DNA of 64,000 nt, from NCBI GenBank assembly GCA_965235115.1, contig OZ249437.1, positions 46,066,001 through 46,130,000 on the forward strand, written 5' to 3'. The position numbers were made by a program, and so were the translations under genes. Positions 2,406 through 10,185 of the stretch are shown here, piece after piece (position 1 is the stretch's first letter; each line of letters begins with the position of its first letter). This DNA is from Laetmonice hystrix. Lineage: Eukaryota. The notes under the pieces were generated by a model. It saw nothing but the letters and a program-made list of their open reading frames with translations. It searched no databases and was not told where the DNA came from.

Positions 2406-4382
2406 GTTGATCCTATGTTAATCCTATTAATTACTCGTGTAAGGGACCTGTAATCCCTCCGTCCCTGTACTACCTCGGCTCTGGTCCTTCTGTTCCCGGC
2501 TCGATGTCTCCAGAGAGGGTCTTCTGCCTGGATTGATGATGTCAGAGATCTTCCCACCTTCTAGTGTTTCACCAGAGGCTGGCATCAGAGGCCAGAGAGG
2601 GTGAGAGGGGCGATTCTCATACCCCCACGAATCCTGAACATCTGGCTCCACCCTCAGCACATACAGAGGGCCATTATGTGCCCCTTAAAACACCCCAAGC
2701 TAGGACACCCAGAAGAACCTCAACAACAACGTGAAAAAAGTATCAATCATCCAAAGAAAAAAAAAGCGACCTCCCGTCTGTGTGATGTGCGAGGGCCGTG
2801 GGGTCCGGTTACAACCTAAGTGGATCCAGAGGATGCGACCGTATCCCGACACGGTGACCAGTTCGAGAAGTTCCTGTCGGCGACAACTCTTCACTGCGCA
2901 AGGGTTAACACAACCGGCGTCGCTGTCATGGTTCGATCTGATGGCAGAAAATTCCTCCCAGGGAGGTCGACGTCGGTCCTCAGACTCCAGGAATATTGGG
3001 GGATTCCTGGTTCTCCTTGAACAGTCCACAGCCTACCTCTCGCTCGGACTGGGTGGACGTGTTGAGTGGCCCTGAGTCTGGACTCAGTGGTATACGGTCG
3101 TAATTATGTGCATACATGGAGTGTGGGACATGTAGCCCTCCAGCTACCCCGATATGTGTGTCATCAGCGCCTTTTAGTGACATACCTGCCGGCTTCCCAC
3201 ACCTTGGGCACCAACAATGGTTCCTGCTCCCTGAATAGATGGTCATTGGTGGTGAGGTCTTTCCGATGACGAGTTAGAGGAATTGATGAGCCTAATGACT
3301 GACGTTATACCGTGGGCAGAGCAGGTTAGTCCTGTCTCATTGTCTATCTCTATGTCCTTTACTGGTATCTTCAAGGACATGAACCTGATGAGTCTATGTT
3401 AATGAGTAACTGAGACATGTCATTAAAGACTGTTACTGGCAGTGTGCGAGATTGATCATTGACCTTTTCGTCGCCTCAAGGTAGCTGCTATGGGACATTA
3501 ATTTTCAACTTCAGGAAAACTATGACATCAATTTGGTCAATTTAATTTAAATGTGAGAAAAAAAGACATCGATTGCTGCTCGGTCAATGAAAATGATATA
3601 CATATCTTTATGAATGACAGATGTCGCGTTTCCGTCAATCGTTTTTTTTTTACTACAGTTCGGTTTTTCTTGCCCACCCTGTAACGAAATTTGCTGTGTG
3701 TGGCCCGGATGACAGAACATGGTTTTACCGATAGTTCACCCAGATGTCACATCCTGACTTCGGTACCAAGGGGAGAAAAGTACGCCGGAAAGCACTGACC
3801 ATGATCGCCGATCCCAATACCACATTTGTGACCAATAATTTTCTGCCATCGTGCTTTTTGTACCATCATTTTAAATCATTCCATCATGATCACCACAACT
3901 TCACCGCAATTTCTGCCTATAATAACGCCGGCCCAGCCAAAGGAAACTACGAGAAAGAAAAGAAGTAAAAATTGATAATATGGCGGGACCATTTCCAGGT
4001 AGAAATGCCATACTGTGAAGTGGGCGCGGATATCGTAGGAATTGCCAACACCAATCACTGAAAGGAAGAGATGGGACTAAGCTGGACCAAGTAAATTTGA
4101 TAACTTTATAGTTTGGGACATTATCGCAAGCCTTTTACTCAACTACACATATATAGAAACCTGAATATGTGTAGCTTAGATTGCGAAACATATATCACAC
4201 AGAAAGTGGTTTTCTTATCTCGACTGAGACTGGTTGGTAAAGGCTAATTTCGTGCTGCACAAGTACAAACGTTAAATGTCTAATTTCATTGCCAGTCATG
4301 AGATGTCCTGACCCTCTCACCTCAGAGACTTCCAGGTTGTCATAAAACCCCTGGTGACACCACTTCACCATGTGACTGTCCA

Positions 4383-5010
4383 CAGTGTCCCCCCGTCACG
4401 TAACTGTCCCTGATCTGACGGTGTCCCCAGTCATGTGACTGTCCCTGATCTGACGGTGTCCCCCCGTCACGTGACTGTCCCTGATCTGACGGTGTCCCCA
4501 GTCATGTGACTGTCCCTGATCTGACGGTGTCCCCCCGTCACGTGACTGTCCCTGATCTGACGGTGTCCCCCCGTCACGTGACTGTCCCTGATCTGACGGT
4601 GTCCCCCCGTCACGTGACTGTCCCTGATCTGACGGTGTCCCCCAGTGACGTGACTGTCCCTGATCTGACGGTGTCCCCCCGTCACGTGACTGTCCCTGAT
4701 CTGAGCGTGTCCCCCCGTCACGTGACTGTCCCTGATCTGACGGTGTCCCCCCGTCACGTGACTGTCCCTGATCTGACGGTGTCCCCCCGTCACGTGACTG
4801 TCCCTGATCTGACGGTGTCCCCCAGTGACGTGACTGTCCCTGATCTGACGGTGTCTCCCCGTCACGTGACTGTCCCTGATCTGAGCGTGTCCCCCCGTCA
4901 CGTGACTGTCCCTGATCTGACGGTGTCCCCCCGTCACGTGACTGTCCCTGATCTGACGGTGTCTCCCCGTCACGTGACTGTCCCTGATCTGACGGTGTCC
5001 CCCCGTCACG
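4383..5010. repeat. 36-bp minisatellite, ~17 copies
   Basis: Unit GTCACGTGACTGTCCCTGATCTGACGGTGTCCCCCC. Variants (cccagtgacg, ctgagcgtgt) recur at 180-bp spacing, i.e. a 5-unit higher-order duplication. Confidence 0.97.
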
Positions 5011-5267
5011 TCCTATCTCCAGGCAGATTGACATGTTCGGTACAATGTTACAAGTGAAATCTCGACAGGTAACATGGGGAGGTTTTACCTACACGTCTCT
5101 GGCAGCGCTGGCCACAAATCACCTTCAGGGATACGGTGTTATATCTTACTGTAAATAGTTCTCCGTGGGACCGATAAACTGCACAATTCAGGAACTTCAC
5201 TTTTCTTCTTTTTAAAATGAGTGACTGTTTCGTTGAACGAACTTTTTCAATGTATTCAATCTTATGC

Positions 5268-5302
5268 TTGATTGATTGATTGATTGATTGATTGAGTTTA
5301 TT
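5268..5302 (-). repeat. LINE 3' terminus: AATAAA + (TCAA)7 microsatellite tail
   Basis: Plus strand reads (ttga)x7 then g-tttatt. Short-tandem tails are typical of CR1/L2-group LINEs. A hairpin AAGCCA-CGTA-TGGCTT lies at 5387-5402. Confidence 0.88.
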
Positions 5303-5582
5303 CCGCCATCTAATAATACATGCATTCAATATATCGCTATTCTATTATAGAAAAATATGATACCTATAGATGTGGAAAGGGATGTGAAGCCATACGTGGC
5401 TTATGAATCCCTAAAGTTCAATATTAACTTATCAACATCGACTGGTTATAATTAATGTGGTGTGTACACGTTACATATACTGATTGATATGCAATACCAT
5501 GAAGTAACTCCAGGCAGAGTAAGATTTGGCCGGAACAAAACAACAACAAAAACAAAAAACAAACAAACAAACAGAAAAGTAT

Positions 5583-8500
5583 CTAGAATGTATGACCACA
5601 TAATAACAGTTTTTTGAGACGTGCTTTAAATGCTCCAATACTACATCGGGTATCGATGTTTGAATATATTTTGTTATAAATTGCCACCCCTTTAAATTTT
5701 AGTGTTTTGTATGTAAAAGACATTTTTCCAATTGGATTATGAAAATAATGTGATTGTCTTGTTGCGTGTCTATGAACATCAGAATTGAGTATAAAGAAGC
5801 TGTCAAACGGGTGTGGTTGTTCTCCATTAATAAATGAATGCATAAAGCACCCAATATTATAGGTATATAAATTATTTATCGTGAGGATACGTTTTTCTTT
5901 GAAATACGGTTCAGAGTGAGCTAGTTTGGGCACACCTGATATTAGTCTTATAATCTTTTTTTGGAGTTTTACCAGTGGGTCGAGTACTGTTTTATTTGCA
6001 CTCCCCCAAGCTGTTATGCAATAGTTTAAGTATGGGTAGATAAAAGAGTAATAAAGTGTTAAAAGTGTTTCCTTTTTTACAAATTTACGCGCTTTCGTAA
6101 TTATTCCTATATTTTTAGCAATTTTTCCTTTAAGGTACTGGATGTGTTTCCTCCAAGTCATATTTTCATCCAATACTACTCCTAAAAATTTTATTTGTTC
6201 AACCTTTTCTACTTTTACATCCATTATTTTTATTGTAATATCTTGAAGAGGTCTACTATTTTTAGTTATATTGAATATCATAAATTTTGTTTTTTTTACA
6301 TTTAGCGAAAGTTTATTTGCATGTAACCATTTTACAATTTCTTTTAGTTCTTGGTTGATTATGTGTTCCATTTCTTTAAGATTTTTTCCATGTAAAAAGA
6401 AGTCACTGTCATCTGCAAACATTATAGGTGTCATTATCTTTGATACTCGTGAGAGATCGTTTACATAAAGTAAGAATAAAAGAGGGCCCAGAACAGAACC
6501 CTGGGGGACACCACATCTTAGGTTTTGATCGCACGATGTTTCTTTTTGGTACGTTACCCTTTGCGTTCGATTGTATAAATAATTTTGAAACCATTTTAAA
6601 GCAACCCCCCTAATTCCATAGTGTTCAAGTTTTCTAAATAGAATTCCATGATTAACGGTATCAAATGCTTTTGAGAAGTCTAAAAATAATCCAATGGTTT
6701 TGTCGCCATTCTCTAATGCCGTTGCTAGGTTTTCGATAAGTAATTGCAATGCATGAGATGTAGAATGTTTTTTTCGAAAACCAAACTGATATTGATAGAG
6801 TATATTATTTTGTTCCAAGAAATTGATGCATCTTGCATAAATAACTTTCTCTAATATCTTTGAAAAGGCGGGCAGCAATGAAACAGGTCTATAGTTGTCA
6901 AATATGTCAGGCTTGCCGTTCTTAAATAGTGGTATTACAGTTGCTTTCTTGCATTGATGTGGAACAATACCCGTTGTGAGGGATAAATTGATGATATGCT
7001 CTAGCGGGTCAAGGTAATATTTTGCGGTGTCCTTGACAATATTTGGAGAGATGTTATCCCATCCCGGACTAGATTTTTTTAACGAGTTTATAATCATGGA
7101 TAGTTCTTCTTTGTCAACTGGATTTAGAAAGATGCTATGCAAGTTCCTATCACCTAGGTAGGCCATGGGACTACTATCAACTTCCGGTATACTTTCTGAG
7201 AGGTTTGGGCCTATTTGTACAAAGAAATCATTAAATTTATTGGCTATATCCTTTTTGTTCGTGAGAGTGTGTCCTTTGTACTGGTACTTATGCGATATTT
7301 TATTTTCCCTATTTTTATTTAGAATGCCTTTTAATATCTTCCATGATTTATTTAGGTTATCCTTATTATTTCTAAACATTTCATCATAGTAATCCCTTTC
7401 CGCAGATTTTAATATCTTGTTCAGTAGACATTTATATCGTTTGTAGTTGAGTTGGTTTGCCTCAGTGGGGTATTTTTTTGATTTCTTGTATAACTTATTT
7501 TTATTTTTTATAGAACTTTTTAGAGCTCCAGTTAGCCAGTGTAGTTTATTCTTATATCCAATTTTAATTACCTTTTCAGGAAATGATTCATTATAAGACT
7601 TTAAAAAGATATTTTGAAATATATCAAATCCTTCTTGGGTATCTAGTACTTGTAGTACAGGTGCCCAATTAAGAGCTTGGAGTTTTTCTTCGAATTTTCT
7701 TATATTCGCTGGGTTAATTATTCGTATTGTTTTTGTTTTAGAGATACTCTTTTCTTTTATATCATGTTTGGTGATTGTATATATCGGAAAATGGTCGGAT
7801 ATGTCAGTTATTAATATTCCATTCATATTTTCGCTATTAGTGTTATTAGTGAAGATATTATCAATTAAAGTGGCTGAGGTCTTGAATACTCTGGTAGCTT
7901 TGGTTATCAGTGGCATATAACCATAGGTGAACAATAAATTCAGGAAGTCGTTAGTTGGGATATGTTTTTCGTAATTAAATAAATTGATGTTGTAATCCCC
8001 CATTAAGTAAACTATCTTTTTTTCACTTGTCAGTTTTTGTAGTATATCATTTAAGGATTGAATGAATAATTTTATGTCAGAGTTTGGAGGTCTGTATACA
8101 ACTCCAATCAGTACATTTTCTGGAGTTCCAAAAATTTCTTTTCCTAATTCTATAAAGGTTGTTTCAATATAGCAATCTAGCACTTTCAAGTCTTGCCTTT
8201 CATCAAATTTAAGAGATTCATAAATACAAATTGTCACTCCTCCTCCTTTGTTGCTTTTTCTAAAGTTATTAATCAGTTTATACCCTTCTAGCGTATATCT
8301 ATCAACAGTCGACTCATTGAACCAGGTTTCAGTCAAACCAATAATAGGAAACTTGTGATTTAAAAGCGTGAGATGATTACGTAATTGATTAAGATTTTTA
8401 GCTATACTTCTTACATTCAAGTGTAGCATGGACAGTGACGTAGTTGGAGAGGTGTTAAAATTTTCATATGCTGTGTTAAATTCATCATCTAGTGTTATGA

Positions 8501-8882
8501 TGCATTCTCCAGATGTTTTGTCCAATATATCTTTAAAGTAGTTAGCATCTGGATCGAAATCCCCTAGAATGCCTTCATGTTCCTCATTTCCTATCTCATA
8601 TGGCCTAAAGGTCATGGTTTCTAGTTCAGTTATTGGAGGCATCGTTTCATTAAACCAAACTTCCGAAATTGCTGCTATAAATTCATCAGTGTCGTTAAGA
8701 TGATTGAAAGGAAATATTCCATTAAAGCAGGTTTGACATAACCACTGTCGATCCCTATAAGATACTTGTGGAATACATTCAATGTGAAATGGTTTACAAC
8801 AATCTGTACATCTTAGAGTCCTCGATTGAGGTACAATTATATTACAACAAAAGTTACATTCATTTGGTGCTGTAGTTGTCAT
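5583..8882 (-). CDS. LINE ORF2 (1099 aa): N-terminal PHD finger, AP-type endonuclease, reverse transcriptase
   Basis: EN motifs HLNVRS, GLTETW, VYRPP, MGDYNIN, LIDNIF, ISDHFP. RT motifs KSSPGWD, NYRPVSLL, QFGFR, LDFSKAFDTV, GVPQGSVLGPLLFLLYVNDL, FADD, KFLGV. C4HC3 pattern at aa 9-52. No stops or frameshifts. Confidence 0.97.
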   Translation of the reverse strand: MTTTAPNECNFCCNIIVPQSRTLRCTDCCKPFHIECIPQVSYRDRQWLCQTCFNGIFPFNHLNDTDEFIAAISEVWFNETMPPITELETMTFRPYEIGNEEHEGILGDFDPDANYFKDILDKTSGECIITLDDEFNTAYENFNTSPTTSLSMLHLNVRSIAKNLNQLRNHLTLLNHKFPIIGLTETWFNESTVDRYTLEGYKLINNFRKSNKGGGVTICIYESLKFDERQDLKVLDCYIETTFIELGKEIFGTPENVLIGVVYRPPNSDIKLFIQSLNDILQKLTSEKKIVYLMGDYNINLFNYEKHIPTNDFLNLLFTYGYMPLITKATRVFKTSATLIDNIFTNNTNSENMNGILITDISDHFPIYTITKHDIKEKSISKTKTIRIINPANIRKFEEKLQALNWAPVLQVLDTQEGFDIFQNIFLKSYNESFPEKVIKIGYKNKLHWLTGALKSSIKNKNKLYKKSKKYPTEANQLNYKRYKCLLNKILKSAERDYYDEMFRNNKDNLNKSWKILKGILNKNRENKISHKYQYKGHTLTNKKDIANKFNDFFVQIGPNLSESIPEVDSSPMAYLGDRNLHSIFLNPVDKEELSMIINSLKKSSPGWDNISPNIVKDTAKYYLDPLEHIINLSLTTGIVPHQCKKATVIPLFKNGKPDIFDNYRPVSLLPAFSKILEKVIYARCINFLEQNNILYQYQFGFRKKHSTSHALQLLIENLATALENGDKTIGLFLDFSKAFDTVNHGILFRKLEHYGIRGVALKWFQNYLYNRTQRVTYQKETSCDQNLRCGVPQGSVLGPLLFLLYVNDLSRVSKIMTPIMFADDSDFFLHGKNLKEMEHIINQELKEIVKWLHANKLSLNVKKTKFMIFNITKNSRPLQDITIKIMDVKVEKVEQIKFLGVVLDENMTWRKHIQYLKGKIAKNIGIITKARKFVKKETLLTLYYSFIYPYLNYCITAWGSANKTVLDPLVKLQKKIIRLISGVPKLAHSEPYFKEKRILTINNLYTYNIGCFMHSFINGEQPHPFDSFFILNSDVHRHATRQSHYFHNPIGKMSFTYKTLKFKGVAIYNKIYSNIDTRCSIGAFKARLKKLLLCGHTF

Positions 8883-9238
8883 AGTGTTAAAATGCCCTTA
8901 TTTATAGTGTAAATAGCTCAAATGCTATACCGGAAAAAGAAGAAGAAAAAAAAACAAAAACAAAACATACGTATATAATACAGTCAGTTCTGAGGCATAC
9001 CATTGCCAAGAAGCCTATGTAGTGTTAACATGACTACCCGGCGCACAGCGGTAAGTGTAAGCTACTCATGTAAGAATGGGGTCAACAAGGTCAACACAAG
9101 CCCACCACTCCAAGGCTGTACCTGAACGCCGACATGCACATGTACTCGCAATGCGGACCACCGATGCAGTCAGGGGTAGTCAGCCCCGTAGACACAATAG
9201 AAGAGCATGTTACTTAATGAACGGTAGAGTACATTTGA

Positions 9239-9940
9239 TCAGGATATCAGTGCTTCTCTAACTGCGACTAAGATCTCCCCAAGTTTATTCTGTCCAGACC
9301 AAGATCTATCTTTGAGTTTAGGATTGTCCAGCTTCACACCTGCACCCCAATATGTGTCAGGGCTTGCCTCAATTAATTCCTTGTCGCCAGTTTCAGTTAG
9401 GAATTGCCGAAGTTGCTGGTTTTGAGTGAACTTCTCCTTACATCCCCGTCTCATGATTTCAAGTTTGTCCGTGTTCCATTTATTTCCCGGTGGTACATGT
9501 ATTGTGTTACCAATACGTTTGATGGCAGCTGGACTGGATGTGTTTAGGATCTTGCTGGCGTTGTTGTCATCATTTACGGCTAATGCTTTATGGTACGTGA
9601 AATACTGCTCTGATGAAGTGAACCACTGACCGTTGACATGAAAATTAGCCTTATGGAAGTTAGACAAAGGAGATAGGTGAGAAAAGAATGCTATAGCATT
9701 ATCCCCTATTTGTCGGGTGCTGATCTCGACAGGGCTTATTTGCTTGGGTACGGTGTGTATTGTTTCAACTGAGTATTTGCGTCCCTCAATGACGAGACTA
9801 TCTCCAACTAATGAAGCCCTCATGCCTTCCTTTCTTGCTTGTTTGAGAACATTTAGAAGAGTTCCCCGTTTTTCTCTTGTCTCCGCACTGAAGTCTTCAT
9901 GCAGGTAGTAGGGTGTGCTGATGAGGATAGTATGACTAAC
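9239..9940 (-). CDS. LINE ORF1 C-terminal remnant fused to a NADAR (YbiA/DUF1768-like) domain
   Basis: The frame stays open 39 codons upstream of the listed Met (9823), to a TAA at 9941-9943. YLHEDFSAETREKRGTLLNVLKQARKEGMRASLVGDSLVIEGRKY resembles a LINE ORF1 C-terminal domain. Then FFSHLSPLSNF..F..NGQWFTSSEQYF..HKA..D..A.KIL..SP...K.IG..W..M..G..EKF.QN..LR.FL..TG..LIEASPDTYWG.G..W.GQNKLG.IL..VR matches the NADAR consensus. Confidence 0.88.
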   Translation of the reverse strand, partial: VSHTILISTPYYLHEDFSAETREKRGTLLNVLKQARKEGMRASLVGDSLVIEGRKYSVETIHTVPKQISPVEISTRQIGDNAIAFFSHLSPLSNFHKANFHVNGQWFTSSEQYFTYHKALAVNDDNNASKILNTSSPAAIKRIGNTIHVPPGNKWNTDKLEIMRRGCKEKFTQNQQLRQFLTETGDKELIEASPDTYWGAGVKLDNPKLKDRSWSGQNKLGEILVAVREALIS

Positions 9941-10000: not shown

Positions 10001-10185
10001 CTAGGGGGTCCAGGATTTTTTTTTTTTTTTGGGGGGGGGGGGGGGGTTCAGGGGTACAATTTGCTAAGGGAGGGGGGAGGGGTTCAGCATGGTCAATTCA
10101 GAAAGGTCTATGGGAAAAAAAGGAGAAAGATTGGTTGCCAAGGGAGGGGGTTGACCCCCTGACCCGCCCCCTAGATCTGCCCCTG
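10001..10185. mobile_element. Degenerate short non-autonomous element (CAGGGGC-GATC-type termini)
   Basis: Right end ctagatctgcccctg; the left end ctagggggtccaggatttt is only a weak inverted match. Internal poly-T and poly-G runs. Confidence 0.3.

Follow-up and report, generated by a model that had tools for sequence, protein, structure and literature searches.

A NADAR domain in the ORF1 proteins of LINE retrotransposons from Laetmonice hystrix

We analyzed a 64,000-nucleotide (nt) stretch of the Laetmonice hystrix genome (assembly GCA_965235115.1, contig OZ249437.1, positions 46,066,001-46,130,000; hereafter the window, in whose numbering positions are given) that contains a copy of a bicistronic long interspersed nuclear element (LINE) whose first open reading frame (ORF1) ends in a NADAR domain of the YbiA family. 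Comparison of this copy with its relatives shows, at the level of sequence, that in many active LINE families NADAR belongs integrally to ORF1, is under selection and is apparently intact at its catalytic site. By analogy with known NADAR enzymes, a role as an eraser of ADP-ribosylation, and thus in counter-defense, is plausible. We assign a probability of roughly 0.55 to the explanation as a whole, in which a selected ORF1 NADAR would remove base-linked ADP-ribose (ADPr) on the LINE ribonucleoprotein (RNP).

A NADAR domain at the C terminus of LINE ORF1 proteins

The window carries on its minus strand an open frame of 233 codons (9242-9940), closed by a TGA stop at 9239-9241 and lying 356 nt upstream of ORF2 (5583-8882, minus strand), as had been described in an earlier reading made from the sequence alone. 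Residues 90-231 of the translated frame match the Pfam NADAR model PF08719 at E=2.6e-40 (138.8 bits against a cut-off of 35.1; model positions 11-162 of 163). The hallmark motifs on which that sequence-only reading had based its call of a complete NADAR (SPLSNF, SSEQYF..HKA, EKFTQN, IEASPDTYWG and GQNKLG) are all present, and a profile of the NADAR family matches E. coli YbiA (2b3w, 2.3e-28) and the P. nicotianae NADAR (8bau, 1.5e-24).

The N-terminal segment of the frame (YLHEDFSAETREKRG...), previously taken to be of ORF1 type, does align with the C-terminal domain (CTD) of full-length ORF1 proteins encoded in the same genome. These proteins are 414-486 amino acids (aa) long and consist of a coiled coil, an RNA recognition motif (RRM), the CTD and a NADAR, with families only 31-50% identical to the window NADAR. 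We built a profile of the non-NADAR part from eight full-length ORF1s and found that it matched human L1 ORF1p (2ykp/2yko) at E=2.7e-10 and the solution structure of the L1 ORF1p RRM-CTD (2ldy) at 5e-6, in an alignment that begins late in the coiled coil, takes in the RRM and stops early in the CTD. A 425-aa ORF1 modeled with AlphaFold2 (mean predicted local distance difference test, pLDDT, of 87) has a helix at residues 18-118, the RRM at 121-203, the CTD at 207-250 and NADAR at 265-424, and Foldseek matched this model to 8bau, to 2b3w and, with a TM-score of about 0.7 normalized by target, to the human L1 ORF1p trimer. From profile and model, these proteins are predicted to be type II, L1-like ORF1p with an added C-terminal enzyme domain. 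They share the coiled coil-RRM-CTD core with human and mouse L1 ORF1p, which has no enzymatic domain, whereas here a NADAR of about 160 aa follows the CTD after a linker of about 15 residues in the full-length relatives.

Conservation of the active site and selection

Active-site residues were mapped through the 8bau alignment from those of the P. nicotianae and E. coli C7 NADARs, as given in PMC11543638. P. nicotianae E43 corresponds to E38 of the window NADAR (within SSEQYF), K50 to K45 (within HKA), K75 to K68, W89 to W82, D130 to D122 and W133 to W125. E125 corresponds to E118, within LIEAS; a Glu in this last strand defines the YbiA type, so that the LINE NADARs fall in the YbiA subfamily (with Glu, or His in some families) as opposed to the BC4488 type with Asp.

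When 1.84 billion cluster representatives were searched in full with a hidden Markov model of NADAR, 35,991 matched at E<=1e-3, of which 1,715 reached E<=1e-30. We examined 155 representatives, comprising the best 150 and six ORF1 homologues, one of them already among the 150. The L1-type ORF1 profile also matched 108 of these 155, each a representative of a 50%-identity cluster with a single C-terminal NADAR. This points to retrotransposon ORF1 proteins as the identity of many animal NADARs, at any rate in this genome and in at least 108 public clusters. For 107 of these 108 the NADAR match is nearly full-length; among them E38, E118, N21 and K97 never vary, 105 retain W125, and position 45 is Lys in 101 and Arg in 4. 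Tandem multi-NADAR proteins, unlike the ORF1-fused NADARs, have many degenerate sites. The full conservation of E38 and E118 and near-full conservation of K45, set against these degenerate repeats, argues for catalysis, and we predict from sequence that the NADAR of these LINE ORF1s is catalytically intact.

Synonymous sites are saturated between families, and we therefore give only the proportions of synonymous and nonsynonymous differences (pS and pN): pS is 0.8-0.9, whereas pN of the NADAR ranges from 0.14 (window against family L006) to 0.29. These values support purifying selection on the domain and bear out the expectation, implicit in the sequence-only reading, that it is under selection. 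Within families the ratio of nonsynonymous to synonymous rates (dN/dS) is about 0.15-0.5, a figure that comes from only 1-11 substitutions and on which we do not rely.

We also built a quick tree of 190 NADAR domains, without an outgroup, in which the ORF1-fused, multi-NADAR and giant-polyprotein NADARs are intermingled and at least seven changes of label are forced.

Linkage to ORF2 and recent transposition

A search of all 627 Mb of the assembly, with the 233-aa protein as query, returned 772 first-look candidates. All 150 that were scored had E<1e-26, most covered residues 8-231 (CTD plus NADAR), and 94 lay in frames of at least 400 aa; a genome search with the Pfam NADAR model yielded 741 candidates and the same picture. 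Full-length ORF1-NADARs are followed 130-420 nt downstream by an ORF with an apurinic/apyrimidinic endonuclease (APE) domain, and when eight loci were retrieved in full, five proved to contain an intact ORF1-NADAR together with an intact ORF2 of 980-1102 aa. The linkage in many copies that the sequence-only reading would lead one to expect is thus found across the genome.

The arrangement also occurs elsewhere. Three contigs of assembly ERZ26222911 carry a 438-aa ORF1-NADAR, a gap of 366 nt and a 964-aa ORF with APE and reverse transcriptase (RT) domains, and in ERZ27283454 a 461-aa ORF1-NADAR precedes an APE-containing ORF that reaches the contig end. A 58%-identical ORF2 homologue in public assemblies likewise has a NADAR fragment upstream.

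The elements have the hallmarks of LINEs: an ORF2 with APE and RVT_1 domains, 5'-truncated copies with variable endpoints, and 3' tails. As in L1, ORF1 is paired with an APE-RT ORF2 in a bicistronic element, and families other than that of the window end in poly(A) or other simple-repeat tails after AATAAA. Several families have copies that are 97.5-100% identical, lie on different chromosomes and share a common 5' end, indicating recent transposition. Variable 5' truncation, a pattern typical of LINEs, is seen in copies L024, L026, L030 and L032, one of which is nested within another LINE. We considered whether short NADAR-only frames of 180-216 aa could be stand-alone genes and rejected this, since each is a LINE copy that has lost its 5' part, and one is inserted within another LINE. 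Separately, a tandem array of units of about 190 bp (L035:1730-2450, read on the minus strand) adjoins the poly(A) tail of a full-length NADAR-LINE on contig C1.

ORF2 and the LINE clade

The window ORF2 matches Pfam RVT_1 (3.5e-34) and Exo_endo_phos (7.3e-6), with a sub-threshold match (3e-3) to a PHD-like zinc finger at its N terminus. A profile of ORF2 matches human L1 ORF2p at 2.9e-39; in single-sequence searches the ORF2s of the window and of L035 match R2 only and not L1 ORF2p. When a model of the window ORF2, of low confidence at a pLDDT of only 60, was compared with Swiss-Prot by Foldseek, BS, X-element and jockey ranked first (1e-38 to 1e-34), followed by R1, with L1 (1e-26) and Tx1 (6e-25) behind them. 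On this ranking from a low-confidence model, which puts the window ORF2 nearer jockey, BS and X-element than Tx1 or L1, we lean toward placing the window element in the Jockey/CR1 group. A C-terminal FKxxLKxxL motif presumably fits the same group. Pairwise identity among the ORF2s that accompany NADAR ORF1s is only 26-42%, and by sequence the NADAR ORF1 module seems to accompany deeply diverged ORF2 lineages. The clade may thus differ from Tx1, or NADAR ORF1s may span several LINE clades.

What the ORF1 NADAR might do

In the mechanism we favor, ORF1p would trimerize through its coiled coil and coat the RNA of its own element in cis, so that NADAR would be concentrated on the RNP with three active sites per trimer. 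There it would hydrolyze base-linked ADP-ribose (on N2 of guanine, or on cytosine) from the template RNA or, alternatively, from the single-stranded DNA exposed during target-primed reverse transcription. Removal would keep readable a template that might otherwise block the reverse transcriptase. The selective agent would likely be host or microbial ADP-ribosylation of nucleic acids. The known chemistry of the family offers a basis for this analogy: all NADAR/YbiA enzymes tested remove guanine-linked ADPr from DNA (PMC11125620) and G- and C-linked ADPr from both DNA and RNA (PMC12945103).

Several observations weigh against this reading. Among the mapped residues R79 alone, which contacts the pyrophosphate in the P. 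nicotianae enzyme, is not kept: the window has Asn at this position, and its relatives have Asp, Lys or Asn. In three young families (L039, L040 and L023) and in a copy within a Gypsy element, the YbiA-type Glu118 is replaced by His. Phage NADARs, which are active (PMC11125620), likewise have His here, and by analogy the His118 variants are probably active as well. The window copy itself is truncated and unable to make a full ORF1p. The sequencing runs that contain the sequence are all of DNA type. Finally, the pierisin/CARP- or DarT-like transferase that the sequence-only reading envisaged in the host did not surface: the genome gave no match to five Pfam models, DarT (PF14487), Enterotoxin_a (PF01375), ADPrib_exo_Tox (PF03496), ART (PF01129) and Scabin-like (PF22596), in six-frame searches that are weak on intron-split genes and that were also silent in control genomes. 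These weak searches thus provided no cognate ADP-ribosyltransferase for a writer/eraser pair of the DarT1-NADAR type, and given their weakness and the silent controls they are only a mild argument against a resident writer.

That LINEs, Gypsy elements and invertebrate RNA viruses have all gained NADAR suggests that replicating nucleic acids face a common selective pressure. More tentatively, bivalves and other marine invertebrates might restrict retroelements and RNA viruses by ADP-ribosylating bases of their RNA or of single-stranded DNA intermediates, for example with enzymes of the CARP-1 type, and LINEs, Gypsy elements and nidoviruses might each have gained NADAR independently as a counter-defense. 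Guanine ADP-ribosyltransferases of the CARP-1 type are known chiefly from Bivalvia (PMC12945103, PMC11209040), and NADAR domains occur in nidoviruses of invertebrates, a Pacific oyster virus among them (PMC11848433, PMC12377751). Such a conflict would be a eukaryotic analogue of that between DarT1 and phage NADARs. If counter-defense is the function, it would add a new layer to animal genome defense; if not, the ORF1 NADAR would nonetheless join the esterase as an enzymatic accessory module of ORF1, and one of a new kind. ORF1-NADAR offers a concrete setting for nucleic-acid ADP-ribosylation in animals, an eraser predicted to be tethered to the LINE RNP.

A rather unlikely alternative is that NADAR serves the RNA metabolism of the element, acting on NAD caps, on 2'-phosphate or ADP-ribose-1''-phosphate intermediates, or on ADP-ribosylated RNA ends. 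Such a role was originally proposed for the NADARs of RNA viruses and has been relayed for retroelements (PMC12477816) and nidoviruses (PMC11848433); in nidovirus polyproteins NADAR co-occurs with macrodomains and RNA-repair enzymes (PMC11848433). The negative writer searches described above, weak as they are, would also suit it. However, the only activities that NADARs have been demonstrated to possess are N-glycosidic cleavage of base-linked ADPr and of riboflavin intermediates (PMC11543638, PMC11125620, PMC12945103). Moreover, no LINE is known to need RNA processing of this kind, and most LINEs lack a NADAR.

We consider it less likely still that NADAR is a structural or nucleic-acid-binding appendage of ORF1p, or that its substrate is a small molecule or a protein, as in YbiA-like detoxification or de-ADP-ribosylation against PARPs. 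The metabolic N-glycosidase role of E. coli YbiA, reported in PMC11543638, offers a precedent, and both the loss of Arg79 and the Glu-to-His change at a key position in active families would fit. A mere appendage sits poorly with the conservation pattern that argues for catalysis; fusion to an RNA-coating chaperone would put NADAR on nucleic acid, and a metabolic role has no obvious benefit for a selfish element.

That the NADAR frame is a host gene or retrocopy lying beside a LINE ORF2 by chance could draw on the short ORF1 part of the window frame and its lack of a start codon, but we regard this as ruled out by the genome-wide copies and intact ORF1-ORF2 pairs: the order ORF1-NADAR, spacer, ORF2 is kept in hundreds of copies from many diverged families and recurs in other assemblies, and copies of the window family and of others share LINE-typical 5' truncation.

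Relation to known systems

The sequence-only reading named no described fusion of NADAR to a LINE, but PMC12477816 (Genome Biol 2025) states that, in several Tx1 LINE families of Crassostrea gigas catalogued in Repbase, the ORF1 proteins appear to be YbiA-family NADARs, and suggests action on RNA intermediates. The LINE ORF1-NADAR architecture is therefore already in print, and the claim of novelty is weakened. The LINE case occupies one sentence and an alignment figure in that paper, which, unlike the present work, does not analyze copy number, selection, catalytic residues or the full architecture. Our literature search turned up no further publication that connects NADAR, YbiA or DUF1768 with non-LTR elements. 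The biochemical papers on NADAR list molluscs among NADAR-bearing animals, call the role there unknown (PMC11125620 explicitly) and do not mention transposons. To our knowledge, the scale of the association, the selection, the conservation of the active site, the Glu/His variation, the spread over ORF2 lineages and the parallel acquisition by Gypsy have not been described before.

With the bacterial DarT1-NADAR (DarTG1) and YarT-YbiA systems the LINE NADARs share the hydrolase superfamily and the catalytic residues, and with the orphan NADARs of T4-like phages they would share the carriage by a mobile element of an orphan eraser for its own nucleic acid. They differ from the bacterial pairs in having no adjacent transferase, a eukaryotic host and a fusion to an RNA chaperone, and the domain is known here by its sequence. 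Esterase and PHD ORF1s of CR1, L2 and Jockey LINEs are likewise accessory modules on LINE ORF1, in keeping with a modular and reticulate evolution of ORF1; here, by contrast, the module is a predicted NADAR glycohydrolase, and one family combines a NADAR ORF1 with a separate middle ORF. The Gypsy-NADAR of Ectocarpus (PMC12477816) and the nidovirus NADARs (PMC11848433, PMC12377751) resemble the LINE case as independent gains of NADAR by replicating RNA or retroelements, but sit in Pol or in the replicase polyprotein and not in ORF1.

Other NADAR-bearing elements and proteins

A Ty3/Gypsy element in the L. hystrix genome encodes a Pol of 1660 aa in which a NADAR (E=1.3e-29) follows the aspartic protease and precedes RT, RNase H and integrase (G000:C1:23019314-23024293, plus strand; L043:3515-8494). 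A similar Gypsy frame of 1649 aa lies around G000:C8:28856722-28857147 on the minus strand. The Gypsy and LINE NADARs have in common a long loop before the GQNxLG motif, and in the 190-domain tree, which lacks an outgroup, the Gypsy NADAR has no supported placement.

The LINE with a separate middle ORF (G000:C2:45418500-45425500; L044) has three ORFs: a 573-aa ORF1 ending in NADAR (1096-2814), a middle ORF of 232 aa (2780-3475) that gave no Pfam match, and an APE-RT ORF2 (4063-6999). Its ORF2 alone matches human L1 ORF2p in a single-sequence search (phmmer, 1e-19), and C8, C19 and C5 carry similar frames, 573, 567 and 532 aa long.

Among public proteins, P0127-P0143 have 3-7 tandem NADAR repeats in up to 4240 aa, with the catalytic Glu residues lost in many repeats; Haliotis rufescens XP_048255699.1 is a seven-repeat protein. 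Giant proteins of 2914-4635 aa on contigs of 10-20 kb, which may be RNA-virus polyproteins, carry a NADAR near the N terminus.

The window copy and its surroundings

The LINE copy in the window occupies about 5268-9920 on the minus strand and is a bicistronic, APE-type, 5'-truncated element. Reading along the element, flanking DNA contributes the first seven or so codons of the open frame (9921-9940), the L1-type CTD remnant with the linker to NADAR covers 9722-9920, recognized by alignment with full-length ORF1 CTDs, and the NADAR domain covers 9242-9721. A spacer of 356 nt (8883-9238) separates it from an intact ORF2 of 1099 aa with APE endonuclease and RT. The 3' untranslated region (5296-5582) was read from the sequence and has AATAAA at its end, and it is followed by a simple-repeat tail at 5268-5295, (TCAA)7 on the element strand (Tandem Repeats Finder: period 4, 7 copies, 100% match).

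A sister copy on contig C29 is 92-96% identical in an alignment that runs from near window position 9917-9923 through ORF2 and in which the spacer is partly conserved. The C29 copy continues upstream into the RRM and coiled coil, both missing from the window copy, where the sequence upstream of about 9920 is unrelated and of low complexity; the window copy is thus 5'-truncated, and the first codons of its open frame, which have no homology to the C29 copy, are flanking DNA. Its ORF1 lacks the coiled coil, the RRM and a native start codon, keeping only the end of the CTD and NADAR, and the copy is non-autonomous. The fusion of NADAR to a LINE ORF1 that the sequence-only reading drew from this frame holds across many families, but the window frame is a truncated remnant and does not begin within the element. 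By eye we saw no convincing target-site duplication of the window copy.

A stretch of poly-C and then poly-A (10030-10060, read on the minus strand) borders the truncated LINE on its upstream side and resembles the tail of a different repeat insertion. About 250 bp past the 3' tail of the LINE, a minisatellite with a 36-bp unit occupies 4385-5011 (17.5 copies, 94% match) and gives rise to long spurious open frames on both strands.

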